Assembly (NCBI GenBank): GCA_965285935.1
Contig: OZ260663.1
Coordinates: 72,602,001-72,666,000 of the forward strand
Reading direction: 5' to 3'
DNA: 64,000 nucleotides
From: Ophelia neglecta
Lineage: Eukaryota
Shown: positions 1 to 40,122 of the stretch, one piece after another
Layout of the letters: every line of letters starts with the position of its first letter
How positions within the stretch are numbered: the first letter of the stretch is position 1
Notes under the pieces: model-generated
What the model saw: only the letters and a program-made list of their open reading frames with translations
Told to the model about the DNA's origin: nothing
Database searches by the model: none
Program-made: the position numbers and the translations under genes

Positions 1-3000
1 AAAGATTGCTGATCTCACTATTATCAATGCATACATTGATTTTGACACATTAGATTGAAGTAACATCGTTATATATACCTCAGAATATCATTCCCTTCTT
101 AAAATCTGATTATAATATTCGGCGTTTACTGTTTTGATTAAATATAAAGTTAAACGCTTAAGGCAATGTAAAACCAAAAGGAACTTTCATCTCTAAACGC
201 AATGTATATTTGAAAGGAAATAAATTAACGTTCTGTTTAATATCTTGTTCAATATATATTGCAACCTCGCATGCACATTGTTTTGTGCATTAATGTAACT
301 GTGTTGAGTAAACTTGATTAATATTAATAAATATTTTGATTTATGGTTTTTAAATTAGTAGGCCCCTTTATTATAGTATGTTGTAATAACAATATCTACT
401 GGCATCATTGAAATGAAAATGAAATGAAGAAAAACTATCATATATCAGATGTCTCACTTTAAACATGGCCCATTTAAAAGGTCATGTGAGTCATAGTGAA
501 CGGCAGAATACCATAGACAACCAAAATTGAATCTGCAGGTATAACATATGCCTACTTATCCACATTAGAACTATAGCTACCCCACCGCCTACACAGTGTT
601 CTTAGAATGTTAGATTTTGGATGATTATGTTTCAAATCGGATTACTGATAAATCGCATGATTTTTGCTTCCATAGCTTAAAATATCAAATTGCAATGATA
701 AATTACCATATCATTTGGAATTTGGTTATATTAGCAATTTGCTTGCAGAAGGCATTAAACTTGCTTTTTAACAATTGAAGGACCAAACGGGAAACAAACA
801 AGTTTAAGCTGTCTACAACTTAAACTGCAAGCTTAAATGTTAGTATTACATTAAACGTATGATTATTTAAAATTTGAAAAATACTTATAAAACTAAACAC
901 CTGACAGTAGGCTAGAACCAGTCGCTCAAGACATTCCTTTCGATGAGAACTGACTGCTTTTCACGGGCCACTTATCCCGAAGAAATCCATTTGACCAAAG
1001 GTTGTATAAATCCTCCATGTTATAGTTGCTATCTAAAATGGGAACGATTTTTTTAACATAAACATTTATTGGCATATTTACTATGTCTTAATTTACATTT
1101 CACGTGATCTTAGTGGCTCATGTGATTATGTAACTATATATTTAAATGTTTTGTCCCCAAAGCCCCAACCGTGACTCCTGATTATGATCGTGTTAGCCTC
1201 AGGCTAATACCAAATAAATCTCTTGTTTTCAACTGATCCAAGCATTATGTTGTATGTTAGATCTACGTACTCATGACAAGGGCGCATCCGGCTGACTGCT
1301 TGGTGTCCAAAATCGATTAATAATCGGTTATTTGTTTCAGGGAAGAGAGGATGTTTATGGACATCTTCCGCATACAAAATTGTATTATGTTTTATTTAAC
1401 ACCATGATCGTGTTATCAAAACCACGCATATAGCCCAAAGAACCATAAAATAAATGAAGTATTAAGGAATCAGTCGTTCTTAGAATGCTATGGGGATTTT
1501 CACTTCTTTTTCAGTTTTGGTTATTGACAGTACACACCCGCACTCCTAAGCACGGTAACTCCAGATACTTATCCTTCATGGCGAGCCTCAAAATATGACA
1601 AAATATTTCCCTTGCTATTTGCTCTTAATAGAATAAGATGCATCGGAATCTTGTTCATGTGAAGCAAACTGTTAATGTTGCCATCATGTCCTGTTTCCGA
1701 ATGCGCTGAGTCACTGGAAGATGCTAAACATCATGTCAAATTTGACCTTGGGAATGGTATCTCATTTTGACAACAAACGTCTCTTTCGCTTTCATTGAGC
1801 GCTTCGATTTGTTTTGAATTTGAAATAGGCTAAATCATGGACCATTAAAAGAGGCTGCAGTTAAGGTGGATGCAAAATATGTGTTAATTTTAATAAAAAG
1901 AATGTTTTCACTTACATAGCTAAGGGTTTCTATCATCTTGATTTCGAACCTTTATCAACGCACGGATTACAGTTCATGCATGATAATATCGCCTCATGTA
2001 CAGTAATCATAATACCAACAAATAGTAAAGATATAAAAGGCAAAGCAGTGATTTTCTTCATATTCATTCTGTATGAGAATCCTGACGTGACAGTCTGTAG
2101 AGAGCAACACCTCCAAGGAGTCCTTCAGGTAATAAATATAATCTCGTTACCCCATACAAAATGTCATTCTCAACTATCAACCTCTAAAAGGTTGATAACG
2201 TTAAGTAAAACACACCATGGACGCTAGAGAAACACCTGTTTTATATGGAAGCCGACCTTCACGATTTCTTTCGCGGAAAAAACTATAAAAATATACACGA
2301 ACAAGAATATCCATTGTAGCTGCCTGTGGTAGTCTGCAGTAGACTTGTCAAGTCGACAACCTGGTTTGATGAGTTCGGAATGACCGGAAGGGGAAATACA
2401 CCGGGAGGGTCTTATTTTATATTGCATCTTTCATGCAGTTGCATAGCTGCCGTCGGTGACACAGTTTTGTAAAAATACTAACTGCTTTTAGAGTAAGGGA
2501 GAAAATTCTACCAAGTGCACCCAGGGTACCTGGCACATAACAGAAACGAGTGGATATATCCGGTAAAGATGAACGTTCATTATCACCAACTGTATGGATT
2601 TTTCTCGTCAGGACATTTCCCCACATTTTCCGTTTATAATTAGAGGGTTACGTCAGTTGCACTGTTTTTGAATCCAAAGAATTCAACGAGTCCTATTCGT
2701 TATACTCAAGATACAAAAATATATGAACCACACATACACCAGTTGTATTAATTCATACAACAGGCTGAACGCTATGTCGGGCTTGGATTAATGTAAATAC
2801 TCATTGGACAAAAAAGTACATCGTTCATGGTAGAATAAATACTTATCTTATTCCAAATTTATAAGCGAAAATATTGAGATAGGTATAAGCAATATCGAAC
2901 GAAATCGTAGACTAATTAATCCGTTTTTCCACGGGACCTGAAGTTATAATGTTATGTTAATTGCAGAAGCCAGAAGTGAACAGGACAAAATATTTGATTG

Positions 3001-17800: not shown

Positions 17801-20379
17801 GGATCTCCTATCAGGTTTTACAGTACGCCTTTTTGTCAAGCCTTTCAGTGTCAAGGCGACCAAATGAGTCCAATCTTATATATCACTGGTACTAGTTACC
17901 GCTGGACAAAGTAGTACCTGAGCCGCACCCAACTGGGTTTGGCCAGACCGAACAAGGTTTAGCAAAACAAATGACAGCTAATTGGGTCTGAGAGGTTGTT
18001 TACATCTCAGTAGCAGGAAATATTTGTAAACAGCTGACAGACGCGTGCACTATGGGTGGCACTATGGACGCCGCCTGTTAATCATACCATTAAGTCACGT
18101 CGGAAGTCGGTTTGGTTGTGCCATCACCAAGACAACGTGCACCTGGTAAATATATCTTATAATTCCCGTTACAAACTAAATTATAGACACCTAGTTTATT
18201 TCCCAAAATCAACCCTGTATAATCTTTCACCATTGAAAACACGATTTGAACTATTGAATCGGGTAGGCCTTCGTGGCTTATAGTGAGGCAACGTGTATTG
18301 TTTGTATCGAAAGATAAAGGGCTTCTCGCAGCAGGCAATGCATGCCTGGTAGAAATTAAACCATCCAAACCATGCAGCTCGGCTTCGGAGCTGTGTGCTG
18401 AAAAAGTCACCATATGATTTGGACGTTCATCGGTCTACATGGAACCTGATAGTGAAATGTTAAGCCGCCATTTACACGTGTTTTTTAAGTGTAAAAGAAT
18501 TAGGTTCCCCTGGTGTTCTCGTTGTAACGACAACTTTGAGTATAATCAACAGTGACGGGGGCCCTATTTTATCAAGGGTATACATTTCCAGGGAGGATTA
18601 AACCGTGCTGTTCAGCAAAGTTATATTAGCCATATACAAAAAAAAGGAATATAAAGGTAAACGAGAGTTGACATTTTGTAACCGCACTGAGAAATAAGAT
18701 AAAGCGTTCGGTTCATAGTAAGGGGTCTATAATTCACATTTTTTCGTACAAAAAAAGAGCGAATCCATTGCGCTCCAATCCCTTGCACTTTTCAAACAGC
18801 AAAGAAAAGGTTAAATTCTTAGCTGGGCTTGGTCGAATGAGCTGATGATAAGCTTTATACACTATGCCCTTTACTAATGTACATTGATTCAAACATAGTG
18901 GGTATTTTCAGGGTAAAACTAGACTATTTCTTGTCGTATTATAATAAGCTATTATACCTCATATTAGTCTCCAAGTTCCCCTATTATTCTATTACTAATG
19001 AGACCTAAGACAAACCCAGGATACAATCTCTAGACGCCTCAGTAAGAAGGTATTTGGAGCACAGCCACTATCAACAAAAACATTCCATCTCAGGCCCAAT
19101 TTATAAAAAGAGTTTCCAAACATACAAATCGACCAGAATGTGTAAGAAAGCACCGTCTTTGTTTGGCCCCGAGGGTATTGCGAGAATCCAAATTAGCGAT
19201 TGGCTTCTTTTTCTTTTCCCTTCTACCTATTTTACCTGAAGCTCTCAAACATAACGCGGTTTTGTATATTTTCTCAATAGCAAGCTCCACGGTATACATG
19301 ACACAGCGGAAGTAACCGGCTTGAGATTTTCTATGTAAACGCACGCAAATGTTTATTATTGTTTGTGCTAAAACATGAAATTTATCTGGCACTTGACACT
19401 CTATCAAGAATAGCTACCTGAGTAGCTACCTCTGTTTTGTGTGTAGGAGGTTTTCCAAACGATATGCAGTAGTACAGGTGTGTAGAACTTCGACTGCGTT
19501 TCCCATTTTTCGCTTTTCCCCATCAATTTTACAGTCTTTATCAAAATTAATAACCATTACGACACTTGATCGTCATGATGTTCCTTGTCCTCTCCCTTTA
19601 GAGTGTAGAAAAGTTTCGATCTTGCCTACCTCCAGCATTTAATTTTAATAAAAATGATGTATAATATATCTCTACTCGTAAAGAGCACTATCGTTCAGAA
19701 ATAAGAGACGAGGGTTTTAGTTTTTCATGGAACTACACCGGCAACCTGTCCAGTCGTGGGCCATATTCTGACATGCTCTCCTGAGAGTGTATATTGAGTA
19801 CTCTCTCCAGTTAATCGCCCCCTGAAATTGTTCACTCTCCACAGGCTTATCCCGAAAGGCTTTTGTCGTAACGCGCTGGTAGTTGAGCTGGCCATTACGC
19901 AGCTTATTGGACGATTTTTCACCTGCTCAGCGCTAAAAGAAATCACCTACAACTCCTGAATAAAATTAAACCGGTACATTTCGGCACAGATTAGAGGTAC
20001 AGTGCTTACACTTAACTGGAAAATGAAAGCATTCCCCTCCCCACCGTACATTAATGTGTGTATACAAAACGGAGCTCTGTGGTCTCACAGTTGCTGATGG
20101 TTGCCAGTCCAAGATCAAGGGCGAGCACTAATAACCGAGGTGTTTTTGATGAACTGAACTCGATCAGGTCTAAGGAGTTTTATGTTCCTGAAATGCAAAG
20201 TGTATAAATCGGTTCTAGGAGTGTTTGTTTTCAAATATTATAACCTTGCCAGGGGGGATTTTTTTCCCAAGAGAAGCACGATTTTCAAAGCTATGACCAA
20301 AATGTTCCAGCTGATGACTGAATAATTGACTAATAATATAGAAGTAAGCAAAAGATATCATTCCAGTACAAACCTATAT

Positions 20380-21000
20380 TACGGTAGCCCATCGTGCGAA
20401 ATTTGTAAGGGTAAAGCTCCAACAATTACGCGCGCCTCGTGGACGGCATCATTTTCCTTACACCCCAAGGTGAGTGAATCTGTTTTATCTACCAATGTAT
20501 TGCTTGGCAGTCTTTGTGTAATACATTAAACGAAAGTTAGGAAATTCGTTGTCAATCCTGTGTACTGGTTTGATTTATCGAGATAGCTATTTGTGAACAA
20601 TTCTCGAGCAACATCAAGCGTGGGCGATATTAGGAGAAATAACACCTTAAGTTCCCGTTGCTGTCGGCTTGGTGCACTTTTCGAACCTGAAACTTAATTG
20701 ACAGTAGCTACTGATAACTGTTAACATGTCCATGGTATCTGCTCAGTTTAGAATGATGCGGTTTTTTTATCCTAGCCGTTCAAATAAGTTTTCGATGCGC
20801 GTGTGTGTAAGGGCACGGCGCGCGTGTAAGAAAGGGCACTAGCCGAGAAAAGGGAACGTAAAAGTAAGGCAACGCACTTTCTGTGATTGTTGCTGTTCAG
20901 TTCCTGGCTTAGAAAGTGGTTCTTTTGCAATCTTTTACGTACAAATGGTCGACCTTTGCCAAGAAGTCACTGATTTTAAGCCATGTTTTCCATAGACTCA
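20380..21000 (+). repeat. Left terminal inverted repeat (~621 bp)
   Basis: Aligns by eye to the reverse complement of 28139-28759 with about 16 differences, only 2 of them in the outer ~380 bp. Similarity ends after CCATAGA(C/A)TCA. Confidence 0.95.
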
Positions 21001-21228
21001 AGTATTCTTTTTATAATGTTTAAATAGCGCAATACTATATTGAATGTTTAGCCTGTTTCATGGTTCTTTTATAAGACTTAGCCTATAATGCCATTTGCAA
21101 AGAGCGATATCTATATATGATCGGCCCATTTTATCTATTTCACAATGTTTTGTGAAATATATTTCACTGTATCTCTCAGCGTTAATTTTAATAAACGATA
21201 TGTGCATGTTTTTTGGCATTTCAGAATC

Positions 21229-21884
21229 ATGGAATTCCTTGAAACAAGTGTCCACGAGGTGCATGGTGATGATGTATCGTATTCCTGCGATGAATGTGAT
21301 TTAAAACGCCCAAGTTGTCCAATCTGAAGAGACACTGCTGCCGCATGCACGGCGAGAAAGTACATGGTTGTACACAGTGTGACAAAAAGTTCGCTCTCAA
21401 ATCAGATGCCATTTATCACAGTGCGGCACATACAAGAAGTTACCTCTGCAGTTCCTGTGGGAAAGGGTATGCTAGCAAACATGGTTTACAAGCCCATATG
21501 GACACTGTACATTCATCTGCGGGTTTGAGGTGTAAACTATGTGATAAAACATTTGCGTTCCAGTGCCAACTAAAAGACCATATCAATGCTCACCATGAAA
21601 TACTCATGCACTCATGCCAATTTTGTAATAAAAAGTTTGCAACGAGGTCATCTGTGTGTAATCATCGGAAGATTTGCCACAAAAATCCAAAGAAAGAAAT
21701 TCATCCTTGTTCCAAATGTGGGAAAAAGTTCAGTTCCAAGGAATATCTACGGAAGCATGACATTGGTAAACACAGCCTCAAACAGTTTCGCTGCCCATTT
21801 GAGGATTGTCAGGAAGTGTTCAACTGGCCACAAGGTCTCAAAAAACATAAAAAAAAAACACACATAACATTGGACTGTATTTAA
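21229..21884 (+). CDS. Tandem C2H2 zinc-finger protein (7 fingers), second gene of the transposon; 1-nt frameshift near 21307 in finger 1
   Basis: ORF 21315-21884 contains six complete C2H2 fingers. The upstream frame from ATG 21229 (MEFLETSVHEVHGDDVSYSCDECDLK) supplies the CxxC half of the finger that ends KLSNLKRHCCRMH. Only 5 nt separate the halves where 6 are needed. An acceptor-like TTTTGGCATTTCAG ends 4 nt before the ATG. Confidence 0.8.
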
Positions 21885-22316
21885 GTGTCATTACTAGGAA
21901 CGAGAGTCATATATATTTATAGATAAATTCGTAGACGCATATACATAAAATGTTACCCTAATTGTTATGGCTGCTGTGCACTAAAAAGCGTGCCTGCAAG
22001 GTATCGGAAACCGGAGGCCCTATGATCAAGTTTTAAGTTTACAACGGCAGAATTGTCTATATTTTAAGTTGCGTTTCTCGTTTATGTTGACTTTAAACTT
22101 TTTAATTCACAACTACATCTGTATTTTATTGTTCGATAGCTACTCTAGTAGAAGTTTAAGCCTTATACTTTTGTCTTATTGGTGATTAATCAAACCAAGG
22201 ATGTCTGGTATACAGCATACCACGTCTTCGTGACATATTTTTGATCATTGAGTCAGTTTTTTTTACCTTAATTGAGTTATTTACTGATTGATGTGATATG
22301 ATGAAGGATAATATAC

Positions 22317-22325
22317 TTTATTAAA
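22317..22325. terminator. Candidate overlapping bidirectional polyadenylation signal (TTTATTAAA)
   Basis: AATAAA on the minus strand (22322-22317) overlaps ATTAAA on the plus strand (22320-22325), midway between the two convergent stop codons (21884 and 22783). Confidence 0.4.
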
Positions 22326-22782
22326 TGGTGCTTAAAATATTTAGAATCATTAGGTACAAGCTTTTTAAATGTATTATCAAATCACAGACCACTAACTCTG
22401 ACCGGTGCAGTGTACTTCCCTTCGTAAAAACGCATATTGTGTTCACATTATAGAAGTTGAATGCACAAATACGAAGAAGACAGGTCATTTCGAGAAAGCA
22501 TTTACTAGTACAATTGATTAACAAGACTTATATATAATCGACAGTATTAACATTAAAGTTCGTTCAGGAATCGATAATTCGAGCCATGTGCTTTTTTATG
22601 ATGTTTTTTTTTGTCAATGTTCGTTCAGCAAAATAAAGTTTGTTCATAAGTTGTGTTATACAATAAAATGGAAAAATGTTCTACTTCTTCTCATATTACA
22701 TGTTAACAAATATGTATGTGCTATCAAGCCGGCGTATCTTCACAGAGAAAATCATATCCACCGGGTTTTCACTTGGACCCAC

Positions 22783-25700
22783 TCACACTCTTTGGTGAGA
22801 CATAAGTTTCGACTCATCGGTCTTATAATACTGCCGGACTCCACGAGCGCCTCTAGACGGGGAGTCCGGCCCATGTATCCTGGAAGACTTTCGCTTCTGT
22901 TGACGCTGCGAGCGCTCCTTCTTGTCAAACATATGATCCCTGTTAAAAGAAAGGAAATCTAGTTCACTTGTTGGTAATGTACATTTCTGCATACAAATAA
23001 ATTAAAAATTCATTTGAACAAAATGGAATTAAATTGGGATTAGCACCTGACAGCAATTTGATTGATGCACAAGGGGTCAATTCTACCACACGCTTGCTCT
23101 TGGGATTGTGCCGTATCCATTGGACCTGTCAAAGTGTCGTGTTGTGAATAGACTCGCTTTTTTGAGGTCATCAAAGAAAATTTTCTGCAATGAAATACAT
23201 TAGTAAATACGTTTTTTGTGTTAGAGCAACAGCACAAGTCAGTTAGTTAATTTCTGTACGAAAATAGTACCTGTTTGGGTCCAAACGCATGTGTATGATC
23301 TCACAAGCACTGCTGAGTGCTGGTTTAATCTCGTGTGGCTGAAGGACCCCAGAACCAGAGGCATGCAAATCCTGAAAGGTGCTAAAAAAGTGTTCGCCGT
23401 CAAGGCTACCTATAGCACGAGCATTGTACGACTGCTTGTCTAGCAAACCAAATAATTGTATGCGCCTTTCAATCCCAGTTAACAGACCCTCGTATAACAC
23501 CACTGGGATGTCCTTAACGTGACTGGTATAGGGGGAAAAGTGGCTGAAATCAACGTCTCGGAGAAGCCATGCTTTAAGATCCAGCAACCACTCTGTTCTC
23601 TGTGTGACTGAAATTCCGGGACTATCAACAGATGCATATGCATGCCTTATGAGGCGACAAAATTCTGCTTCCTCAAAATCACCATTACGTGACATAGCCT
23701 CTTCCACTTCGTCAGTGAATAGGGCTGACGCGAATTCAGGAGATTGTTTGTCAACCGTGCAGTCTTCTACAATTGTCCTCTGGAGAATGTGTTTGGTTTC
23801 ACTGCTTTCTGCCACCCTAAGCCATGCGGATTTGTATATGTTCGCCTTCTGCATTCCATTCTTGCAAATCTTTGATCTGAATCCAGTAAATTGGTGATAA
23901 AAATCTAAAATGAACAGGCTGTACTCAGCTATGGAGGGTATGTATTCCGGCCTAGAATACCAGTGAATGGGATTGTATTGAGAGTTTATTCCCTCGATGA
24001 TGATGCCATCTTTGAAAGGAAGTGAGGCTTTCCAGTCCTGCAAGGTTTTGTGCCAAGTATACTCTGCCCAAACTGCACCAAGTTCGTCCTTCGGTAGTTT
24101 CTGCAACAAACTTTTTAGTACATCACATACTCTATGTTTTCTAATCTTATTTTCTGAGCTTTTCAATCTCGAAGAATCTCCGTATTGCAATGACAGGAAG
24201 TTACATATGCCTTTCTTGTCATTCTTTGATAGCTTGAAGCCATTTGCTCTAATTTCATCCAACACAGGATCAACTATCTTCTGTAGGTCATTCAAAGTGT
24301 ACATTTCATTTATGATTTTAGCTGTGCGTAAGGACATCTCAAACATGTCAAAACTGTCAGCCAGCACAAGTTTCTTCTCCAAGTTACGTTGCCGACGACT
24401 AGGCTGTCTTGACTTAAAATCACCTGAGAACGAATTCCACATGCTTAAAAGATGTTTTTGTTGAAGATGAAAATGTTGCTCATCATTACCTTCTTGCTGG
24501 TTGGTGTTGTTACCTGTGACATCATCTATATTTTCTTCCACATTTGCCTGTTCAGCGTCTTCACAAATTCCTAGGCTATCGCCGAATGATGAACCTTCAG
24601 GGGCAGTATCCACCCAATTGGCAGTTGATACGGCTGAATATTGATCTTGATCTGTCTGCATCAAATAATCCACTAGATGATCATTTTCCACCAATACATC
24701 CCCAAGGTCTGTTTGTAGCTCATTCTCGGTTTCATGGTTGCTTGTCATGGTTGGTTCTAATGCTTTTTTTATACTAGACCCAAGCTTAATACGTTTCATC
24801 AACGACTGTACTGATGGTTCTTGCCAAAATGGAGAGGTGTCTCCATTTGCGGTCGGGATGGCGAGGATGCCGGAAGCCATGATCACTCGTGGTTGATCAT
24901 CAGACACCTCTGTCTTTAGATCAAATTGGTGTTTTGTCGCATGGGCTTGAAATATGTCCACAATGTTCAGAACTAATTTAGTCTTTTGCTGGGATTTAAC
25001 ATCTTTGTAGTGATCTTTCTGTAATTGTAATATGGTCAAAGGCTGGTTTTGTGAGTCTCTCAGAGCAAGTTTTGCCCACTGACCATCTGAACAGCTGACT
25101 GGGACATAAATGCCTGCATGGTGCATTTTTTGCAGAATTTCATAGTGCATGGCTCTCATCTTATCCGCTGACAATGAATACCCTTTCAGTGCATATCCCA
25201 CAGGGAGTGCATGTGGTGCCTCAGGATTAAAATACCTATCCAAATCGCTTGCTACCCAAAGCAGAACCTCACTTGGTTTCTCCTTCGTTCGTAGGTATGC
25301 TTCTTTTACTATCATCAGACTATGCTCACAAAGCTGTCGCAACTTTACCAGTTGAAAGGTATCTTTGCGGTCTTGTTTATGACGTGAATGGTGCCAGATT
25401 TGGCCTGAAGATGTTGAATCATGTGCACAGGGAACTGCCTGAAGGGAAGGGACTTCACAAATAAATTTCACGTTTGTTTTCATGAACTGCTGACATGCTC
25501 TCTTCAGTTCAACAGATGACGATGGGAACTTGGTTGGTCGTCTTGCTGATGGCGAACCATAAATATCAATGCCCAGTTGAATGATTTGCTTGGTCAATTC
25601 CTCATCGAAATGAATTTCCAGCACGGTTGATGACTCTTTGCTCCAGGAGACGTATAGTAGTTTTTTTGTGTCTGTTGCAGCCATTTCAAGCAGAACTTGA

Positions 25701-27981
25701 CAAACATACCTCTCCGGCAGCGTGTAATGGACGTCTGTCGTGAATCTTTTCCCAGGATAGGGACATTTTATTTCCACTGAAGTTGCTTCACATGTTATAT
25801 CACTTGGTCTTATGTCACCATCTGGGCTCACAATGAGGAATGGAGCTTCATCTACTTCTGCAAGTATTGTACAACCCTTTTCAAAGAACACGCTTCCTGC
25901 TTGGAGCGAAGGTATTATTTTGCATGTCAAGGTCGCAACAGCATCTAACTCATGATGAGTTCCATAGTCAAGTAGCTTCTGAACATCTTCTGTAAATGGG
26001 GCTTTTGGTTTGCCATGCATCACGCTGTCGAAGTGTTCCTTCATGTCGTTCAATTTCCCTAATCCAAGTGCCGAGTATGCAGTGCTGCCTGAAATAGAAA
26101 TACATTCACCTTTTCAATTATTTAAGAAAATTGATCACACTCATTTTTGGCTGTTCCTCCTGCTATTGACAATACGAGGGGCAACAGGGGGAACAGTGAT
26201 TTGTCACTAACGGTGCCTCCTTGGTAAATATGACATCATATAAAGAAAACGAATGATTGGTCACTTTTATATAAGGGCAACAGTGACTACATACTGCAAA
26301 ATCATACACTATGTTTTCTGACCTGTAATTTTTGCTTTCTTTCGCAACTGGAACCAAGGTTGAGATCGTTGTTTTATGAGTTCAGGATCTGTCTGTGATT
26401 CGTCATTGGCAAGGCACACATAATTACCTTGGTGCAGCATACTGATAAAGCCCTTTCCTTCTTGGTAATTCTCATCATTTTGCATAATTGCTGCAGCATG
26501 CAAACACGTATCAATAGTGTCCATTGCTTGCTGCACACATGCATCTATTTGCGCAAGAGCTGTTCTCAAGGCGCTGATGATGTAACTGTATTTGGGGTTG
26601 TCTTTTTTACATTTCTCAGCTTCTGCCTTGTTCATGGACTCCCATTTGTCTAAGCACAAATTTTTTTTCACCTTAACCTCTCTCAGTTCCTTAACTCGGA
26701 CGCTTAATATATGGACAATTTGACGGCAGTCTTCAATCAATTTCTTGTTGTTGACTTCCTTAATGTCAATTCTTCCCATCTTGATTTCATAATCGCACTG
26801 TTCCATAACACATGATATCGATTTCGCTTCGATGTCTAGTCTTTCTTCTTTTTCTTGGAGAGTGGGCGGTCCTTCGTGGCCAAATAAATTTACCACTGCA
26901 TCTTTTCCTTTGGTGCAGGTATTTATTTTTTTACCTAAAATGTAATTGAATTATTATAAAATTAGATACTGATTGTTTAATAATACAATCATTAGGATGT
27001 CTACTATATTATATTATTTGTCGGGTACATACCATCAAAGCAAAGTTTGTGAGGTTTGGTCTTGTCCAGTAATCGAGACATAGGCTCCATAAAACCAGCT
27101 TCCATGTCTGCCATAAATGGTTCTTGTTCCAATACACCCTTGATGGGTACAGCAAAGTTTATTCGACTCTTTGAAGGGTCGAGGTGGTCTTCCGGTGAAG
27201 TGCCCTGACCAGTGTTTTTTTGACCACTCATAAAGAACAGGAATTTTCGTTTAAAAAGCTTGAAGCCTGCCCTCCAGAATGCCTTAACCTGTTCATCGTA
27301 TCTCATTTGTGAAGTTTTGTTCACACTAAAATAGTCAACAACATCCAAGAAAAGAAGGTAACTTATATTGTTCATCGGCAGCTTTCCTGAAGAAACAAGG
27401 TAGAATAGTTTATTCCATCGCATCAATTGCCCATGCTCTTTAAGTTTGTGTAGAACGTCGGGTAATAAACTCTGCATGCGATTTTCAACTGATTCAAATT
27501 CTTCCATGTCGTCCACTTCAGGATAATATTCAGTGTTATCAATAGGTGAACTATGCCCTTTTAGCTCATCTTCATTTGTAATATTCAAAACCGAAAAGCT
27601 TGCTTCAAGACAATCTTTCTCTGCGCTGCTGAACAAAGCCCTCTTAGCACTTACTGATGAATTGTCACATTTGCCTTTTTTCTGTGCAGGGCTTTTAGAT
27701 GGTGTTTGAACTGCCCTGAGCTGAATCTCGTCAGTAGAAATCACAATTTCATTGCCGCTTTGATGTTGGTGCAGAGGCACAATATTCGAACCGTTTACAG
27801 TTATAATTTTTGAAATCATGACACTCTGCCCCGTTTTAGGGTGAATCCCAAACTCGCGGATTTTCATGGGTTTTGTGCCATGACTCTCAATGAGATGTGA
27901 AGCTAGATCTTTGAAGGTTGTTGGCCCATGTGGACAATAGCCACAATAGTAAGCCCTGTTCATGTCTGGCAAAGGGTCCAT
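22783..27981 (-). CDS. P-element-like DDE transposase with inserted YqaJ (lambda exonuclease-like) domain, 1557 aa; exons 27981-27033, 26934-26323, 26088-23271, 23184-23047, 22939-22783
   Basis: Five ORF-track ORFs join in frame through GT-AG introns (phases 1,1,2,2; 4674 nt). Junctions read KLCFDG|KKIN, KAKITG|STAY, LDPNR|KFSL and IAVR|DHMF. Motifs: N-terminal CGYC..HLIESH finger; D316 (CFDG); YqaJ motifs QRSQPWFQLRK..ITGS, YGTHHE567, SPD610G, E626IK628CP, YVCQV; EVLLWVASD..LPVGY; SD855G; D1249FYH; D1300KQSPEFASALF; SLDGE1419HFFS. These match the P/THAP9 motif series FDEM, xDG, DxxH, KMxVxxAxxxFS, QDxLExxFS from memory. Confidence 0.85.
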
Positions 27982-28028
27982 ACCTATAAGAATATAAGTT
28001 TATTGTCAGAGTATTAGCAATATCTATA

Positions 28029-28033
<5 letters not shown>

Positions 28034-28074
<41 letters not shown>
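28034..28074. repeat. (AT)n microsatellite, about 20 units
   Basis: Directly visible. It lies between the right TIR and the transposase splice acceptor. Confidence 0.95.
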
Positions 28075-28078
<4 letters not shown>

Positions 28079-28138
28079 GTAGTTTTTAAACTGAAATACA
28101 AGCAGTCATACATTTATCAATGAAAATGAGTTTTATTG

Positions 28139-28759
28139 TGATTCTATGGAAACATGGCCTTAAATCAGTGACTTCTAGGCAAAGGTCGAACATTTGTACG
28201 TAAAAGATCGCAAAAGAACCACTTTCTAAGCCAGGAACTGAACAGCAACAATCACAGAAAGTGCGTTGCCTTACTTTTACGTTCCCTTTACTCGGCTAGT
28301 GCCCTTTATTACACTCGCCCCGTGCCCTTACATACACGCGCATCGAAAACTTATTTGAACGGCTAAGATAAAAAAAACCGCATCATTCTAAACTGAGCAG
28401 ATACCATGGACATGTTAACAGTTATCAGTAGCTACTGTCAATTAAGTTTCAGGTTCGAAAAGTGCACCAAGCCGACAGCAACGGGAACTTAAGGTGTTAT
28501 TTCTCCTAATATCGCCCACGCTTGATGTTGCTTGAGAATTGTTCACAAATAGCTATCTCGATAAATCAAACCAGTACACAGGATTGACAACGAATTTCCT
28601 AACTTTCGTTAAATGTATTACACAAAGACTGCCAAGCAATACATTGGTAGATAAAACAGATTCACTCACCTTGGGGTGTAAGGAAAATGATGCCGTCCAC
28701 GAGGCGCGCGTAATTGTTGGAGCTTTACCCTTACAAATTTCGCACGATGGGCTACCGTA
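28139..28759 (-). repeat. Right terminal inverted repeat (~621 bp)
   Basis: Reverse complement of 20380-21000. Confidence 0.95.
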
Positions 28760-31700
28760 TATATCGAAAAACAGTAAATGTTGAAGAAAGAGAATAAGGT
28801 GTAAGCGACAGTAGTCACATGAGGATAATGTATCGAGATATAATACTAAGATATAATGCTATGACATAGTCTGAGCTACAAAATGATCAAGTCTGTAGTT
28901 CATTTCTGGCCAGTACATTTTAGCATCATTCTAAATGACTACGCCGTTCAACCGTGTGGAGGGTTCCAAAAGTTGGTCATTGTAATTGAGTGCCTTACTG
29001 TCATGCAGTCGGCACAGTTCAGTAGCCAGAGTTGGGGAGCATGCCGCGGCTTCGAATAATTTTTTATGAGCTGCAGTTCTCTATTTCAGCTGTTAAATGA
29101 TTCTCATAATAACCATGTATTGGTGAAGTATGATTTAGCGCACAAATGACTTACATAACTTATTTAGCAAACTAGGACTAGGAATCAAGTAAACACTGCA
29201 CGAACGAGACATGTTATCCTTCGGGAAACAACACCGTTAATACATTCTTAATGTCAGCCCTTCTTACAATGCCGAGTTGAACAAACAAGCGCAATTGTTC
29301 TTCTTTCAGGTAGCAAAGCATATAATAATGTAACCTATATAACCAAAATGTCAGCGTCCTTTCTGAAGAAATATAGATGATACATTTTGCGCAATATCGA
29401 TATAAACCGTTACGATATACGACTTTGTTCAAACAACTGTGAAAGGCATTATTTCGGAAAATATCAGTTTCCTTGCTACCAATAAAAATAGAAGTTCTGG
29501 GCTGGTTTGGACCTGCCTAGAGTAAACTTACCAGACAACCAAAGATGTACAAGGGCCCGTATAAACAACGATTCATTGCAGGGTCTAAACAGTACAAGCT
29601 CTACAGGGTGTTATGGAGTGTTAGAAAAAGTATTGTGTCCAGATTTTCGTTACTCGGACTCAAAGCCTATCTAGATGTAAATTCTCAGATCTTGATGTCA
29701 TGGGTTCAATGAATTATCGGTCTGTTTCTATCTGAGACTTATCTATGTTCATTGTTGTAAACAACACTTCATCCTGCTACTTTAAAATTAAGACTAAAAT
29801 ATCTCGTCAAACACTGTTCTTAGAATGGAATGTCGATTAATATATTATGTAAATGGCACGTAAGCAGAGCTCGTTTAACACAACAGACGCATGTATGTGT
29901 TAAGTCACAACAAAAGAAACGTGTCTTGTTCACTTTACAGAATTAACATCACTTTATTGCAACGCAGAGGATAAGTTACAACTGATCTTACTCTCAATGT
30001 GGGTGTTTGTAAGTGATAAACCTGCATTACTTTGCACACGGCCACGTCTAAAAGATATGTGCAAGACAGCTAATGGGCGAGGTATCAAAAAGTCACCTCA
30101 TCGAGGCCAGACGCTTGGAAGGAGTGTCCTAGGAAGTTCTGAGCCGCCTGGTGCTAAATGGACCGTACAATCAGCTCCCTCTTTAGACAACAAAGAGCCT
30201 TTACATCTTGAGTTAGTAATGTTTTATTGTATTTATAGAGACGAGTTCGTCTGTAGTCTCACACTTGGGTATATTTCGCCTTCGAAATTCCCACGTGACC
30301 AATGACTCGATTGTTTGGTTTGATATCATCGATAACTATGGACTACTTCTCACTGCCAGTGATGTCAGATTTACCTTTTATTCATTCAACTTCATATCAT
30401 ACACATAACTAGTATCATGAAGTGTGTGTTTTGACAATTGGTTTTATTTTGGTTCTCGAGCTAGCCATTGTGTTTCGTATGTCCACTATTAAGCGTTTTA
30501 TGGTAATTGTGGGGCCGAAAGTCCATCTCCAAACTCGCTAAACTTTCCTTTTCGACATTAAATGTTTGACACAGATTTTATTATTATATTTTTTTGCAAA
30601 AGTATGTTGCTTATTAGATACAGAATAAATGCAGATAGTCAAAAATAACCATTGGTGGTTAATTAACCATGTAAATTTCTTTCTATACTCGCAGAATAAA
30701 AAATAACTCTCTGCAAGGTGTCTTACTAACCACACTGGGAATTGGTGTGAAGTTCTTGAAGTATTTTACGAAAAAAAATTGCCACGGCATTGCGTCACAA
30801 GAGGTAATCCTCTCCTAGTCACCAGTCAAATTAGCAGCATTCCAGCTGCGTTATGTTTGAGTGAGCAATGCAAAAAGGCATATATATTCGCGGAGCAATA
30901 TTACTTTGATGTGAATCCCGTAATCCTCGCCTCTCGCTGGGACACCTTAGCCACAGTGACTTCCCATCAGTGATAGTAGATCACAGACGTATGATTAAAC
31001 CAAACGTTCGCCAAAAAGTTGCACCTGGCGAAAATTACTCGGTAATCGTTTACTCGCAGACCAGAGTTGTTGACCTTGTTTTATTTCCGATAGGGTCGGA
31101 TAAGGAGGATGGCAGATGCTTAAACAGGCCTGCTCTTTTGATTTCTGGATTTCATTTCTTCCATGTTGGTGTCAGCCTCACAAAGTCTGTAAATTATTGG
31201 GCAAGTCGCTAGGGTCAAGTCTTAGGCATAAAAAGGCAGATAAGTTATTGGCAAAGAGTACCTCTAATTTGCTTTATTGCACAAAAACTGTACAACTTTA
31301 ATTCGTTGGTATCCGCAACCTCGCTTTATATATTTACTCCGCCGTAGAGGGTTTTCCCTGTACATGTATACAGATTTACACTGATTTATCCCAGTCTGGT
31401 TCAACTTTTATTGTCACTTTTGATTTATTTGCCAAGCGCTATGTTCGAGCTAAACATAAGTAGTTATTGGCAAGTGTGTGAAATCCTATCTACACTGAAA
31501 TCCATCGGCGATGAAGGGGGCCGTGCCATCAGAGTGGGTATTTATTGCGCCTTCCGGGAATCAAAGACGTCCCTCACCTAAGCTTTTCTGAGTCATTTTA
31601 CTGGCGTGCTTCTAGGTATTTGACCTGATAGATAGTGCCAAACTGTGCCCTTGAACAACACAGCATCCACTGTAACTTATGCTTTTAATTCCCAAAACCT

Positions 31701-33919: not shown

Positions 33920-36900
33920 AGTGGCTGAGTTCTCTGAATACATCCCCACACAACCCTGGAGAATCTGCAACTTTCGATGAACAACATATATTATGGCGTT
34001 AAAGGCTTAATAAATAGTAGAGGAAAGGATTTAGCAAAAATACAAGTAGGGTTTTGTTGACAGCATTACGGGGGCAATATTGATAAATAAGGAATGGGCA
34101 GACGATATGTTTTTGGCAATAATAGACCATTGTATTGAAATAAAAATATAAAAAATTGCTTTTATCATATACATGACATTTAATTTGTTACCGGCAGGCC
34201 CTGATTTATGACGGCACATTATTACACCCCAGCATACAGACCTTTAACATCTGTGCTATCCTAACTCCTTCGGTATAACAGAAAACACGGAGGCGGCCTT
34301 GGCATCCAAAACTTACAATTCTTTCAATGAAGCCCTTCTTGCCGCCAATTACCCACTCATCTGTTGAGTGGAGAGAGATTCGCGTCAAGGTCTCTTGGAA
34401 GAGGTTATTATGCCTACCCGGGAAGCCAACCCCCGGGTAAGTCATACATTCATAGTACCAAAAATAGCATTAAATCATTTGCAGTATTCATTTGGGAATT
34501 ACTTCTATCTTCTATATATAAGCACCTTTTATTACACAACGTGTAGACTTGTTTCATGAAACCCTCTTGCAAGTGTTCCTTTGAAGTGTAGCGACTCAAA
34601 TAGCGGAAGCAACGTCCAAACGTCCTTATCCGCACAAAGCCACATCATACATGTTCAAATAAATTGCAGAATGCAGCGGCTAATGGAGTTGGTAGCATAT
34701 ATAATGAAAAGAAGAAACAGTGTCAGGCCAAGAAAACTCCTTGGGGGACACCATCAAAGCTCATTTTAACAGACTATAATTTTCCATTAGATACAACAGA
34801 GTGTCTTCTGTTGCATAAAGTGCAAAAGTTAGTGGAATATTTCTAATGTCGTAAGACTGGGTTGAGTTAGAAAAGGACCTTGCATGTGTCGGACAAATAT
34901 TAACAAAGAAATTATTAAAGCTAACCGGAATCGTTCATTTTTAATTTTCAAGTTGCTGATTTTAAGTGCCAGACTCTTTTAGTGCGATATTTAATTGAAA
35001 AAACATGCCTTTATTATGGGCTGAGAGTCAGATTAGATCAATGACATTTAAAAAGCAACTATTCTTGCTTAATGAACGAATACTGTGTTCCATCCCTGTT
35101 ATATAAAGGGGTAGATTTGGTGTGTCAGATAAAAATAAACACTACTAAAATGTGGTGCCTTTACACACACCAACTGTATGTCATTATTATAACTCATTGT
35201 TTTTAATGTACCTCATTAGTGGATTCATAATCAAGTTTTGGAGTCCAGTCCCTAATGCTCCTGTAAGTTCATTTTAATGTGTTGACCGTTAAAATGCCTA
35301 TTTACCAGTCAGGAGTAGTTAACATTTCGAATTGCATTGAATTGAATTGAAATCCATGGCCAGGACTAATGGGAGGACACATCGAGATAAATATGGTTCT
35401 GCTTTAATACTCTTACCTTCTGGTTGATTAGCAACTTGGCAAAAGATTATTTTAAACATATACTGTGTATGATAATGCTTTCGGTGTCGGCAAGTCTGGA
35501 AAATGCTATCATTTCGACCTGTGCTCTCGATGGCATCATTTCGAGTGTCCCCTCCTCCTCATGACTTATCTACGTCATAGCACTAGGCGGGCCGTAAAGT
35601 TTTATGAGAAGGCAAAAGTCAAATAGCTACCACTGACAGACGAGGCGTAGACCTTTGGCAGACCCCATAAAAAAATTACCAAGGTGTCAGCAGAACGCTC
35701 AAAGTATCATCACCCTGGTTGATAGGGAGAGTTGGCAATGACAAACATATACAAGCTGCTTTGCTCTGATCCATGTATGTAGTTATAGTGATCACGACAT
35801 GGTGTCTCCCGAGCAGAGTCATAGATACACAACTCCACCCTTGCTCAATATTATATTTCACTTGGCAAAGTCCAATGGTGTCTCATAAAAACTACATGCA
35901 CTTTTCGATTATTTTCTCCAATATTTCGGGAGAGATTAGACACTCTTGCATATGCATCACCTACATTATATTTGCCAATGAGTGGTTTATGTATAATATG
36001 CGCGTCCCCCTTCTTAGAAGAACAATATGGTCATTTCATGACATAATACTCATATTATAATATTAGCGTTGAGAGACGATTTGAGTTTCATAAAGTTTCT
36101 GTCAGACACGATCATTTAGCTGATTAATACTTAAACTAACCAGGCCATTTGACGTCGCTACTACGCTATAGGAAAACGCTTCACGTAATCTCTCCCTCTT
36201 TGAGGGGCAGTGACTTGGAGCTAGCTGAATCTAGAGGTGAAGTTCTGGAAGGATGAAGACTCATGTCAAAGTAAATACCAATATGTGGGTTTTGCACACG
36301 TCCTTGTTTTAGAATTTAGTGTGAGACAATAATGTGTGCAAATAATATATTTGTGTCCGTTCATAACATGAATAAATTACCATGCTTTATATGAGAATGC
36401 AGCATATTTAAGCATCTAAGAAATCATGATAGTACATGTGTAAGATGCAGTGAATGTTTTACTAATTTCAAATGAGTTCTTGCGTCAGTGATTTTCTTTA
36501 AACCAGTGTTAACTTACACAAATCTTATGATTCAGAATAAGACTTGAGGGGTCTGAGTGTTGCTCGTTTTGCATATACATGGTTTCAAAAAATAACTATC
36601 ACCTTCTAATCTCTTATCATCGAAAGATGAAAGATGACATGGGTAACAAAATTCCCACACAACATCTCTGATATGATTACATTACCGAGTGATGACAGGA
36701 TGATTAGTTATGGATTGTGATCCTGAGAGATAACACGAGACCGACCGACCTCATACGTGGAAACACTATATTTCATTCCCGCGAGGAGAATTCGAGGGCT
36801 CCCTTGCTGCCAGCCGTCTATATTTTATCCAGGATAGGTTCATATCCGGGCTATGAGCTGGTTGTAGATTGGTCTTAATTAACACCAACGATCGAGATGC

Positions 36901-37314
36901 TTGTAGATAAAGAAATCAAAAAACATTTCCGCTTTTTGTCCCGAAAGCAGAAACATTAGTCATTTGTCCAGATAGCGAAAAGCAGCGGGTTTTAAACTAG
37001 GCATTGTCGGTGAATAGGGTCAGTTACAAGCTTAACTTCTCTCTTTATTTAGTATTAAATATGGGTAGCACTGATATGGGTAAGGTAAAAGTTCCTAATC
37101 CACAGTGTCGGTGAATTAACGTTAATTACTAAGGCGTTAATTGGCCTCAAGAGGATGTACGATTGGAGGGGAGTGTCTGTGTGCGGGGAAGGGGGGGGGG
37201 GCAACTTTAACTTGAAACTTGGAAGTTTTGTGTCTTTCCTAAAAGGGTGGGGAGGTGCTCATTGCAATGCGGTTCGGGGTGTTGAGGGCGAAGGGGGGTT
37301 GACGAATGTTGTGG

Positions 37315-37797
37315 GCCGGGGGAAGGTGTACATTGGAATGCAGTTGAAGGGTGCTGGAGAGGGTGTACACTGGAATACAGTTGGGTAATATTGAGGGCGG
37401 TGGAGAGGGTGTACATAGGTATGTGATTGGGGGATGTTGATTGCGGCGGGGAGGGTGTACATTGGAAAGAAGTTGAAGGATGTTGAGTGCGGCGGGGAGG
37501 TGTACATTTGAATGAATTGTTGGATGTTGAGTGCGGCGGGGAGGTGTACACTGGAATGAAGTTGAAGGATGTTGAGTGCGGCGGGGAGGTGTACATTGGA
37601 ATGAAGTTGAAGGATGTTGAGTGCGGCGGGGAGTTGTACATTGGAATGAAATTGAGGGATGTTGAATGCGGCGGGGAGGTGTACATTGGAATGAATTGTT
37701 GGATGTTGAGTGCGGCGGGGAGGTGTACATTGGAATAAAGTTGAGGGATGTTAAGTGCGGCGGGGAGGTGTACATTGGAATACAGTTGAGGGATGTA
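37315..37797. repeat. 45-bp G-rich minisatellite (about 11 units)
   Basis: Unit GGATGTTGAGTGCGGCGGGGAGGTGTACATTGGAATGAAGTTGAA. It explains the 15-aa periodic ORFs in the track. Confidence 0.92.
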
Positions 37798-40122
37798 AAG
37801 GGCGGTTTCACCGCTGTGGAAGGCAAACAATGATGATAGAAGCTGGCATAGTGCAGGGTGATGTGATGGGTGGTGATGACATTTAATAAAAGGTACCGAA
37901 TTGGAGTACAGGGCAACGAAAAGTATAATAAATAGCAACTGTGGGAGGTCCCACATGAAGGACAGTGAGTAATGGGGAAATAATGTAGGGCGGCGAGTGA
38001 TGGGAAAATCGGTGGACAGCGATGGGGCGACGTGGATGGCGGTGGGCGGTGCTGGGCAGGGCGGTCGAGGGTTGTGAAAGGCACAGACAGCAGTCAGGCG
38101 TTGAGTGAAAAATGGTGGGTGGCAGCTTGTGGTTTCTTGAAATGCAGGGATGCGCGATAGAATGAAGTAGAGAACGGTGGAAGGCGGTGGGTGAGGTAGG
38201 GAAGAAGGGGAAGGAGAGAAAAGTTTAATAAGCGCTACTTATTTAACGTTTTTGTAGAATATTACGATGGCCAACATGGCATTTGGATAATCATTTCCTG
38301 GTAAATCGCCACATTATCATGTTCGAAATATGGACCCATGATTTCCTTAAAGAGTCCATGGTTCAAAATAAATGCTATAGGTAACATATAACCACTGTGT
38401 ATTAACCTTCTTAATTTTTTTATTTTATTATTATCAAGCTCATATTTCAAACGACATTGCTTTGCAGCATGGTCCTAGTAAACCCTTGATTAATGATAAC
38501 CTCTAGGGAGTATAGAGCCTGCTATAATTTCTCTTTCACGATATCAGTCTCGTTTTTTTGTTAAATGAATTGCCCGGGGTCCTTATCAATGATTTTCAAG
38601 TACAGTGTATAAAAAAAATGCCCATGACCCTAACCTAGGCCTGGACTTTAATACACGTGATCCAGGGCTGGACATCAGTACCCATGTATGATCCTTGCCT
38701 AGGGCTGGACCTTACTGCAATGCATCATATTTCAACCATCAATAAGACATGGAAACGCCAAATCACATCTAACAAGATTGTGATGTGTTTCAAATGGATC
38801 CGATAATCAAATGGTCTCATTGTTACGCATTTGTCTGAGTTCTGAGACTGACCAGTAGGTTTGCTCAACTGAAACATTCTTTTCGTTTTAACCTCTGGCA
38901 AGACGGCGTTCTGTCTCAGAAGAGCTTCATGTCCTATTGATTATAGTCTCGGAGGCCAGCCGGAGGACAGATGCGGAAGTGTGCCCAGGAGATGTCCACA
39001 CAGGGCTAACGTATGGTGCCCCAATATCGTCAGTGACTGAATATCGACGCATAAATTTTATGCTTACTCGTTCTCTCGGCAAGAGAGCCACGTTTGAGGT
39101 TTTGATGAAAACAAGTAATTTTTTATGTTTTTATTTTTATTAAGTAGGCTTACTCAAATTATGTAAAGACAGGAAAAAAATACATTATGACAGGTTGAAA
39201 ATAAGCCACTACGTATGTACTCAGGTAGACTGCACCAAATGACGGCAGCACAGGAGGCGATATTTGATTATTTAAAACACTAAATGCCAAGCGAAGCTGT
39301 TTGTAAAAATCCTCGCAAGTTTGAGCATGGGGATAATTCGGTATTTCTTTTGTTAACGGGTCTTTGAAAATCAGGACATTATTTGTTCTCCGAAATTCGA
39401 AATTTGCCGAAATAAAGTGCCCATCGTCAAGGGTGCCCAAATATCGTCGACCATTTAAACGATCGATGCTCGTTTTAAGCAATGAAAGACCGAGGAAGCA
39501 AGACTTTAATTAGAATACAAGATTAAATTTTTAATATCCATTTGCAGAAACCACATTGATTAACCTGTAACCATTTCCTAATGACAAATGCCAAATCAAA
39601 GATACAAGGGCAACACTTGTGACGATATAAGTACCAAAGGGTAATTAGTGCAATGTTCATTCGACGAAATTCGGACCCGGGATTTAATGTCGCCTATTTT
39701 GACTGATCATTTATTTGCTAACTCGTATATGCTTTCTTTCCTTTTATAGCTTTAAAAGGTCCACATGCTTGGGTGAATTTCGATACAACAAATGCAACCT
39801 TAATTATGCCATCGAAAAGAAAATCACGGTCATTAGTGAGTGTGTAAATGGTAGTGATGCTTTCTTCTCCAGCAGTGACGGTGTAATGACAGCCGTTACG
39901 ATGTACAGACTCCCTCGTTGACGATATTCAGATAGGCCTACCAGAGTCCTTAAATCATCGTTTCCAACCACCCACGGAAAAATGCAAAAGAACTTTACTG
40001 ATAAATTCAATAACTCGGAGCTTTCAGTGAATGTGTTCCCTTGTTTTGCACAATTGAATGGGGACATTTGTCTGATTTAGGACATCACAGTGATGCTTTT
40101 AGTGAAACTGGTGATGATATTG

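Follow-up and report, generated by a model that had tools for sequence, protein, structure and literature searches.

A P element-related transposase with a lambda-exonuclease-type nuclease predicted inside its RNase H fold

A 64,000-nucleotide stretch of the Ophelia neglecta genome (contig OZ260663.1, positions 72,602,001 to 72,666,000; hereafter the window) carries an 8,380-bp DNA transposon of the cut-and-paste type at 20380-28759, whose transposase very probably holds a second nuclease nested within its own catalytic domain. The transposase, a protein of about 1,500 amino acids (aa) encoded on the minus strand, is a distant, structurally clear relative of the P element and THAP9 transposases, as judged from sequence profiles and from a structural model of a homologue. 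Between strand β1 of its RNase H fold, with the hairpin that follows, and strand β2, the protein has ~450 extra residues, which consist of a helical module and a nuclease domain of the YqaJ/lambda-exonuclease type. We propose that the RNase H site would act on the 3’ ends of the element and that the inserted nuclease might process the 5’ strand, and we put the probability of this explanation, architecture and nuclease role taken together, at roughly 60%, which is a compromise figure. By sequence comparison and modelling, the protein appears to belong to a lineage of P-related transposases in which a second nuclease is nested, an arrangement that is conserved across marine invertebrates and of which we found no description in the open literature.

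Results

A nuclease domain between the first two catalytic aspartates

An initial annotation of the window had placed a PD-(D/E)xK nuclease domain inside a P-type RNase H fold, with D316, D855 and E1419 as the catalytic residues of the transposase and D610 and E626 as those of the nuclease. All five residue numbers proved correct when the codons were checked. The annotation had also pointed to an unusual separation of the first Asp from the next P-like strands, and indeed D316 lies ~480 residues before the EVLLWVASD strand (residue 794) and 539 aa before D855, this part of the gene running from 27036 down to 25085. For comparison, D230 and D303 of the Drosophila P transposase are 73 aa apart, and the large GTP-binding insertion of that enzyme comes after β5 (PMC7776569).

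Each exon of the window gene was analysed separately, and questions about the complete protein were addressed with intronless homologues. The one Pfam domain recognised in the separate exons was PF09588 (YqaJ), found in exon 3 alone at 27.3 bits, above its cut-off of 22 (E-value 4.9e-6). Exon 3 matches the C-terminal half of this profile only, because intron 2 splits the domain; homologues cover the whole profile (positions 1-145) with E-values down to 2.9e-14. A profile of the family matched lambda exonuclease, LHK-Exo and mimivirus R354 over the whole domain (E ~1e-5), and aligned the S-P-D-G and E-x-K-C-P motifs and the N-terminal W...L-R...T-x-S with those of the lambda-exonuclease enzymes. 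In this alignment the Arg of the window’s Q-P-W-F-Q-L-R falls on the 5’-phosphate-binding Arg of lambda exonuclease. A direct sequence search of the PDB with the window’s YqaJ part gave no match, and lambda exonuclease was reached with the family profile only. All 35 of 35 full-length homologues keep the Ser, Asp, Glu, Lys, Cys and Gln residues of the nuclease motifs without change, which indicates that the second active site is under selection. The codons for D610 (25820-25822), E626 (25772-25774) and K628 (25766-25768) are all in place, and the claim that the catalytic residues are intact held for both sets, which are present in the window and conserved across the family.

A structural model matches both P transposase and lambda exonuclease

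To represent the fold of the family we used an AlphaFold2 model of the homologue P0030 (residues 1-1200), to which the window protein is homologous across its whole length. The model was built from a 64-sequence alignment and has a mean predicted local distance difference test score of 89.4 and a predicted template modelling score of 0.80. Comparison of such a model with known structures by Foldseek had been suggested along with the initial annotation, and at E < 1e-3 this search of the PDB returned two families only, the lambda-exonuclease enzymes (2.5e-5) and the Drosophila P element transposase (6p5a_A, 9e-5). Alignment with VIA-align to 6p5a_A gave a Z score of 29.3 and a root-mean-square deviation of 3.0 over 377 of 442 residues, with model residues 58..1199 on chain residues 135..569, and covered 87% of the chain range that contains D230, D303 and E531. 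Other DDE (Asp-Asp-Glu) transposase chains scored far lower, with Z of 13.3 for Transib (6pqx), ~12 for RAG1 and 9.8 for Hermes. The nuclease part of the model, residues 361-564, aligned over ~185 residues with lambda exonuclease (3sm4_B, Z 15.9, model 361..563; 3syy, 15.7; 1avq, 15.2). Because the alignment to 6p5a is sequential and starts 300 residues before the exonuclease, the P-type fold would be built from both flanks of the insert. The nesting originally proposed is thus borne out for the family model.

The model also refines the picture of how the nuclease is attached. The initial annotation had envisaged a coiled-coil stalk, and long helices do lead out of the RNase H fold and a helix does lead back into it, three outward and one returning. 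However, the helices of 42 and 36 aa are consecutive in the model and, since they adjoin, probably fold into a hairpin-like arm and not into a stalk tipped by the nuclease. From the topology of the model, a short neck of two helices probably keeps the nuclease close to the core.

A P-type catalytic triad split by the insert

For comparison at the sequence level we assembled a canonical set, in which one ordinary P-like transposase of the same genome retrieved 138 THAP9-like proteins, 63 of which were used in a profile. Alignment of the family profile to this canonical profile with hhalign gave three local alignments that are collinear and do not overlap. The first (E 0.028) covers the helix-turn-helix (HTH) domain and β1, pairing the Asp of DGKK with that of the canonical ‘DE’ and aligning the hairpins that come next. 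The second (E 0.0014) runs from β2 to β4 and pairs the Asp of x-D-G-Q with that of C-D-G-A-S, and the third (E 0.0014) runs from the D-x2-H motif to the catalytic Glu, pairing S-L-x-x-E-x-F-F with D-P-L-E-x-x-F-G. On these sequence alignments D316, D855 and E1419 would be the equivalents of the P-type triad D230/D303/E531. A five-sequence P-like profile from the same genome was too weak for use with hhalign.

Pfam results for the homologues fit the same arrangement. PF21787 (TNP-like RNase H N) was matched in 14 of the 35 full-length homologues, with a best E-value of 1.4e-5 (25.8 bits against a cut-off of 24.6). The match is limited to profile positions 64-132 and always comes after YqaJ, the pattern expected of a domain split by an insertion. 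PF21788 and PF21789 had no match in any member of the family.

The hairpin before the insertion point carries a strongly conserved acidic motif in the family, G-D-(I/V)-D-L-W-G-x-E, which reads G-K-D-A-V-V-N-L-F-G-H-E in the window copy and has no counterpart in the canonical P-like proteins.

The O. neglecta genome also contains at least 24 matches to an undivided PF21787 RNase H domain, several of them in open frames of 650-850 aa (for example C1:140564517-140564957, C5:33328862-33329302 and C5:74503125-74503565), so canonical P-like elements appear to coexist there with the YqaJ-bearing lineage. The closest named relatives of the canonical proteins are in Mytilus and other bivalves.

The arrangement is fixed across a family of homologues

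When exon 3 was used as the query of an exhaustive search, 1,329 cluster representatives matched at E <= 0.001, of which 273 remained at E <= 1e-30. Many of these proteins are 1,250-1,600 aa long, with the exon-3 match beginning at residue 330-580. Exons 1 and 2 match the same homologues directly upstream and in order, and the exon-1 domain is N-terminal in 52 proteins. In P0009, for instance, exon 1 corresponds to residues 1-306, exon 2 to 308-515 and exon 3 to the sequence from 531, and a contig of another genome has homologues of exons 1, 2 and 3 collinear on one strand. Furthermore, P0010 (4329 nt) and P0013 (4098 nt) are single uninterrupted open reading frames (ORFs) with the full domain order. 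The spacing between the first two Asp residues is 509-602 aa in all 41 family proteins in which both motifs were found. Together, the collinear homologues, the single ORFs and the constant spacing indicate that the insert is fixed in the family and is no accident of the gene model. That exons 1-2 and exon 3 might belong to separate transcripts had been recognised at the outset as a danger to the nesting; the single ORFs of P0010 and P0013 answer it for the family, and the junctions of the window gene itself are predicted ones.

Named members come from the gastropod Batillaria attramentaria, the annelid Owenia fusiformis and the amphioxus Branchiostoma belcheri, and carry no more specific names than ‘hypothetical’ or ‘YqaJ viral recombinase domain-containing protein’. 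The ESM Atlas holds only an unnamed YqaJ cluster of 1,399 aa.

A recently mobile element

The element is bounded by terminal inverted repeats (TIRs) of ~610 bp, which begin TACGG, and by identical target-site duplications (TSDs; Table 1); the ends of its copies begin TACGGTAGCCC. The terminal 26 nt have 53 matches in the 762-Mb genome, compared with 0 for a control, which corresponds to ~26 copies of the element. Perfect 5-bp target duplications flank 10 of 10 paired copies, and the duplicated sequence is not fixed. Four copies are full length and 99.4-99.5% identical, with the three main exons open and 99-100% identical in amino-acid sequence; the remaining copies are internal-deletion forms of 1.6-3.2 kb that have kept both ends. 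The element is a recently mobile cut-and-paste transposon.

Gene structure and the N-terminal region

The transposase gene has three main exons with GT-AG introns and at least two small exons downstream (Table 1). Introns 1 and 2 are both in phase 1, and the codons that they split, GGT and GGC, each encode Gly and rebuild D-G-K-K and I-T-G-S-T, two motifs that are invariant in the family and run uninterrupted in the homologues without introns. Sequence comparison with the homologues suggests that the gene likely runs on beyond the stop of exon 3 into two more coding pieces. The tail encoded by the last exon matches the tails of P0009, P0034 and P0003 with E-values of 2.8e-15, 3e-14 and 1.4e-13, respectively; in homologues the conserved tail reads R-x-H-x-F-D ... 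S-R-G-A-R-G-V-R-Q ... D-E-S-K.

Contigs of all three public runs that we compared with the locus (one sample; 5,251 nt of locus) contain a form in which 37 nt inside exon 1 are skipped (27416-27454, ends AT..AG). This form is probably another copy or allele that carries a frameshifting deletion.

At its N-terminus the protein has a C2H2-like finger, for which the fold match is weak (Kaiso fingers, Z 3.1). When exon 1 was folded alone, half of the model was disordered and its last strand was unformed. Compared with 48,161 chains, this model matched the P transposase 6p5a_A best, with residues 205..290 on the HTH domain at chain residues 137..199.

Table 1 Coordinates of the transposon, its transposase gene and the P0030 homologue model. 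Positions are those of the window, except where P0030 residues are named.
Feature	Position	Strand	Basis or remark
Left TSD, TATAT	20375..20379		Identical 5 bp at both ends
Left TIR, starts TACGGTAGCCC	20380..20988		Inverted-repeat arms of 389 nt (99%) and 227 nt (95%)
Right TIR	28150..28759		Pairs with left arm, 389 nt (99%) and 227 nt (95%)
Right TSD, TATAT	28760..28764		Same 5 bp as left flank
Exon 1	27033..27981	-	aa 1-316 and first base of Gly317: finger, disordered linker, HTH-like domain, strand β1 ending in D316
C2H2-like zinc finger (C-x2-C ... H-x4-H), in the place of THAP	27880..27951	-	Read from sequence; recurs in several homologues
HTH-like DNA-binding domain, aa 205-290	27112..27369	-	Best chain 6p5a_A, Z 5.0; pairs with canonical P-like HTH by hhalign
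D316, putative first catalytic Asp, DGKK motif	27034..27036	-	Invariant in 35/35 and 38/38 homologues; aligns with D of canonical ‘DE’
Exon 2	26323..26934	-	Remainder of DGKK, hairpin, long helices, N-terminal part of YqaJ domain
Start of exon 2: remainder of DGKK and conserved β-hairpin G-x-V/I-x-L-x-G-H-E	26870..26932	-	Family alignment, homologue model, hhalign
Long helical segment, ~125 aa	26483..26863	-	Homologue model helices 206-227, 241-282, 293-328; weak Sec3 coiled-coil match
YqaJ/lambda-exonuclease N-terminal part (Q-R-S-x-P-W...L-R...I-T-G), end of exon 2	26323..26383	-	Arg aligns with Arg of lambda exonuclease W-H-K-L-R
Exon 3 to likely donor	23271..26088	-	GT donor at 23270-23269, after ...LDPN; unspliced frame stops at 23243-23245
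YqaJ/lambda-exonuclease main part, start of exon 3	25547..26088	-	PF09588 E 4.9e-6; TIGR03033 E 6.7e-5; family profile ~1e-5; fold Z 15.9
PD-(D/E)xK residues D610 (S-P-D-G), E626 and K628 (E-I-K-C-P)	25766..25822	-	Aligned with lambda exonuclease S-P-D-G and E-L-K-C-P; invariant in family
Returning helix into RNase H fold	25295..25354	-	Model helix 625-645; aligns with short helix before canonical β2
RNase H strands β2 and β3 (EVLLWVASD ... LPVGYALKG)	25181..25270	-	Homologue model, Pfam, hhalign
D855, putative second catalytic Asp (x-D-G-Q-W)	25085..25087	-	>=90% conserved in family; aligns with canonical C-D-G-A-S Asp
D-x2-H...R motif, helical insertion region	23876..23908	-	D, H and R invariant; aligns with canonical D-x-P-H-L-L-K-x-x-R-N
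E1419, putative third catalytic residue (S-L-x-x-E-x-F-F)	23393..23395	-	>=90% conserved in family; aligns with canonical D-P-L-E Glu
Likely exon 4, minimal matched part (R-K-F-S-L-M-T-S-K-K-R-V-Y)	23139..23186	-	E 3e-4 against tail of Owenia homologue; AG acceptor 23187-23188
Final coding exon, encoding the basic tail conserved at the C-terminus (R-D-H-x-F-D ... S-R-G-A-R-G-V-R-Q ... D-E-S-K)	22786..22941	-	Stop 22783-22785
Helical N-terminal domain	P0030 up to ~170		Model
10-residue strand ending in DGKK	P0030 174-183		Model
Small hairpin	P0030 185-195		Model
Three long helices	P0030 206-227, 241-282, 293-328		Model
Alpha/beta domain	P0030 ~340-613		Model
Helix	P0030 625-645		Model
Strands	P0030 652-660, 672-680		Model
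Helix	P0030 686-702		Model
Strand, then second Asp D713	P0030 706-712		Model
Long helical region ending in the helix that bears E1160	P0030 beyond 713		Model

Discussion

The enzyme described here is most readily understood by setting it beside the two protein families that its model resembles. With the P element and THAP9 transposases it shares an overall fold made up of an HTH domain, an RNase H core and, ahead of the Glu helix, a helical region (Z 29.3, 377/442 residues), and the DDE triad and D-x2-H motif align, with a partial PF21787 match in homologues. The elements are alike in their cut-and-paste type, their TIRs and their internally deleted derivatives. Within the structural alignment of the P0030 model, a helical region also lies at the place of the GTP-binding insertion domain of P transposase. 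In contrast to those proteins, the window family has ~450 aa of helices and lambda-exonuclease-type nuclease between β1 and its hairpin and β2. Its first-Asp motif is DGKK whereas the canonical one is DE; it has a C2H2-like finger in place of THAP and TIRs of ~610 bp, and the window protein is too dissimilar in sequence to be recognised by the Pfam P-type models, with no exon matching PF21787, PF21788 or PF21789 at E <= 0.1. With lambda exonuclease, YqaJ and LHK-Exo, the insert shares the fold (Z 15.2-15.9 over ~185 residues), the catalytic Asp, Glu and Lys, the W...R...T-x-S motif and PF09588. Those enzymes are free-standing, however, whereas here the nuclease would lie within the chain of a eukaryotic transposase of 1,500 aa, and no single-strand annealing protein was seen as a partner. 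Transib and RAG1 share the 5-bp TSD and an RNase H fold that also contains a domain of inserted helices (Z 12-13), but their structural match is far weaker than that of P transposase, their terminal sequence differs, and Pfam found no RAG1/Transib match in the window exons or the homologues.

YqaJ proteins have been met in eukaryotic transposons before. ISL2EU (PHIS) elements, also of the cut-and-paste type, encode one, whose role is not known, in a second ORF of its own (PMC4482050, PMC4122938). ISL2EU has a Harbinger-type DDE transposase with a THAP domain, a 2-bp AT TSD and TIRs that start GG (PMC4482050), whereas the present element has YqaJ within a P-type transposase, a TSD of 5 bp and TIRs that start TACGG. 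Pfam detected no Harbinger-type domain in the window exons or the homologues. In papers on mollusc genomes, genes for YqaJ have been classed as recombinases or relics of viruses (PMC7826175, PMC10225492). Our search of the open literature, which left subscription journals and Repbase Reports outside its range, turned up no publication in which YqaJ is connected with a P-type transposase.

The handling of the second strand is the main mechanistic difference among DDE transposon families, and a P-type enzyme with a second, intact nuclease in its catalytic domain offers a direct handle on this question. P transposase leaves 17-nt 3’ extensions, which the transpososome keeps single-stranded, and its way of cutting the second strand is not known (PMC7776569). 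We propose that the RNase H site of the window enzyme, as in P elements, would nick the 3’ ends to give 3’-OH groups and would then join these to target positions staggered by 5 bp. The lambda-exonuclease-type site would treat the 5’ non-transferred strand at the cleaved ends, either cutting it or trimming it in the 5’->3’ direction, and trimming of this kind would leave transposon ends with 3’ single-stranded extensions such as those held in P-type transpososomes. The enzyme could then be seen as a single-chain counterpart of the two-nuclease solution of Tn7. There, the DDE transposase TnsB works with TnsA, a PD-(D/E)xK nuclease that cuts the 5’ strand, and a 5-bp target duplication results. 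The likeness, a DDE site combined with a PD-(D/E)xK nuclease and a 5-bp duplication, is a functional analogy for which no homology is claimed: Tn7 is bacterial, it divides the activities between two polypeptides, and TnsA is restriction-endonuclease-like, not lambda-exonuclease-like. We consider the nested architecture itself highly probable. The specific role in processing the 5’ strand at the element ends, argued from analogy, is a tentative assignment to which we would give slightly less than an even chance.

The main rival keeps the same architecture and gives the nuclease another substrate. The lambda-exonuclease domain could resect the broken donor flanks 5’->3’ and thereby direct the gap into homologous recombination with the sister or homologue, which would restore the element and raise copy number. 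This is the first of the roles suggested in the initial annotation, which had the nuclease resect or trim donor or element ends to promote gap repair or TIR annealing, in general terms a plausible function. Enzymes of the lambda-exonuclease family are well known to yield long 3’ tails for recombination, and most copies in this genome are internally deleted with both ends kept, the classic product of interrupted template-directed gap repair. Several transposon lineages have, moreover, recruited a YqaJ nuclease, given that ISL2EU also has one in its separate ORF (PMC4482050, PMC4122938). However, host cells already resect breaks, and internally deleted copies are common among transposons without such a nuclease, so their fit to this idea is not specific. 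The placement of the nuclease within the catalytic fold, not as a terminal fusion or separate ORF, also suggests action beside the transposase active site. We regard donor-gap resection as unlikely on balance.

Less probable still is that the inserted module is mainly architectural or regulatory, serving in dimerisation through its long helices or in the binding of DNA ends, or that it acts on target DNA or competing nucleic acids. The insert does contain helices of 42 and 36 aa, and the coiled-coil dimerisation element that P transposase requires (PMC7776569) is not evident N-terminal to the HTH domain here. The S-x-D-G, E-x-K-C and Q residues are nevertheless invariant in 35 of 35 homologues, which argues that catalysis has been kept, and we think this alternative improbable.

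The nesting could also have arisen from a faulty gene model, with exons 1-2 forming a separate gene or remnant, YqaJ being an N-terminal fusion and the true first Asp lying after it, in S-D-L-D-R. Several database proteins do begin at the YqaJ domain, and the three public runs showed no splice joints for the window gene. Yet those proteins come from gene callers that did not join the exons (the locus L001 has the missing parts upstream), and intronless single ORFs have the same order. The Asp of DGKK is invariant, whereas those of S-D-L-D-R are not; canonical P-like profiles put the S-D-L-D-R segment on β2, where they have no Asp, and model residues from 58 onward, far ahead of the insert, are already aligned with the 6p5a structure. 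This explanation is largely refuted. Finally, although some P-derived genes such as THAP9 have been domesticated (PMC7776569), a host gene with no active transposase is hardly credible for a gene that sits between 610-bp TIRs with 5-bp TSDs, in ~26 copies at different sites, four of them near-identical and full length.

Several points weigh against the nested two-nuclease transposase and the role that we propose for it. Phage lambda exonuclease works as a toroidal trimer on free double-strand ends, a requirement that may not fit inside a transpososome. That D316, D855 and E1419 cluster into one DDE site is something we infer from the 6p5a and profile alignments, and the E-values of the three hhalign pieces are each modest, though the pieces are in order and agree with the structure. 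The window’s own exon 3 had no PF21787 match at E <= 0.1, and the β1 pieces (91 aa around DGKK, from ten homologues) had no Pfam match, P-type models included. Similarly, the match of the exon-1 model to 6p5a has a Z score of only 5.0, weak when taken alone and in the expected place, and no THAP domain was matched by Pfam in the window exons or homologues. The splice model of the window gene is based on GT-AG sites, the reconstitution of motifs and the homologues; over the 5,251 nt of locus, the three public runs gave genomic contigs across the introns and no splice joints. A search for excision footprints (>=10 nt of each TIR end, <=30 nt apart) found none, a result that is in itself uninformative. 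The TSD of 5 bp also differs from the 8 bp of P elements (PMC7776569).

We regard it as possible, though more doubtful than not, that these proteins constitute a separate superfamily-level P-related lineage of marine invertebrates, with a single-chain two-nuclease transposase. Cut-and-paste transposition in eukaryotes would then have found a new way to deal with the second strand, independently of Tn7. The architecture also accounts for many invertebrate genes that have so far been named only ‘YqaJ viral recombinase domain-containing protein’ or counted among endogenous viral elements (PMC7826175), at least part of which are transposases. Since the element appears to have been active recently in this genome, a working copy for experiments may be at hand.

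Other features of the element and window

Within the element, convergent with the transposase gene, lies a multi-finger C2H2 zinc-finger ORF on the plus strand (21315-21884), with an upstream frame at 21145-21327. Faint C2H2 gene calls also occur downstream of homologous transposase genes at two other loci, convergent at L033 (16219-16950) and on the same strand at L001 (17140-17787). The recurrence of such ORFs near the transposase in the window and at both loci suggests that a partner gene may be conserved.

The element also contains a (TA)n microsatellite (28020-28074), which falls between the right TIR and the start codon of the transposase gene. Elsewhere in the window, GC skew, which is otherwise ~0, jumps locally to 0.346 at 36001-38000, where GC content is 0.43.

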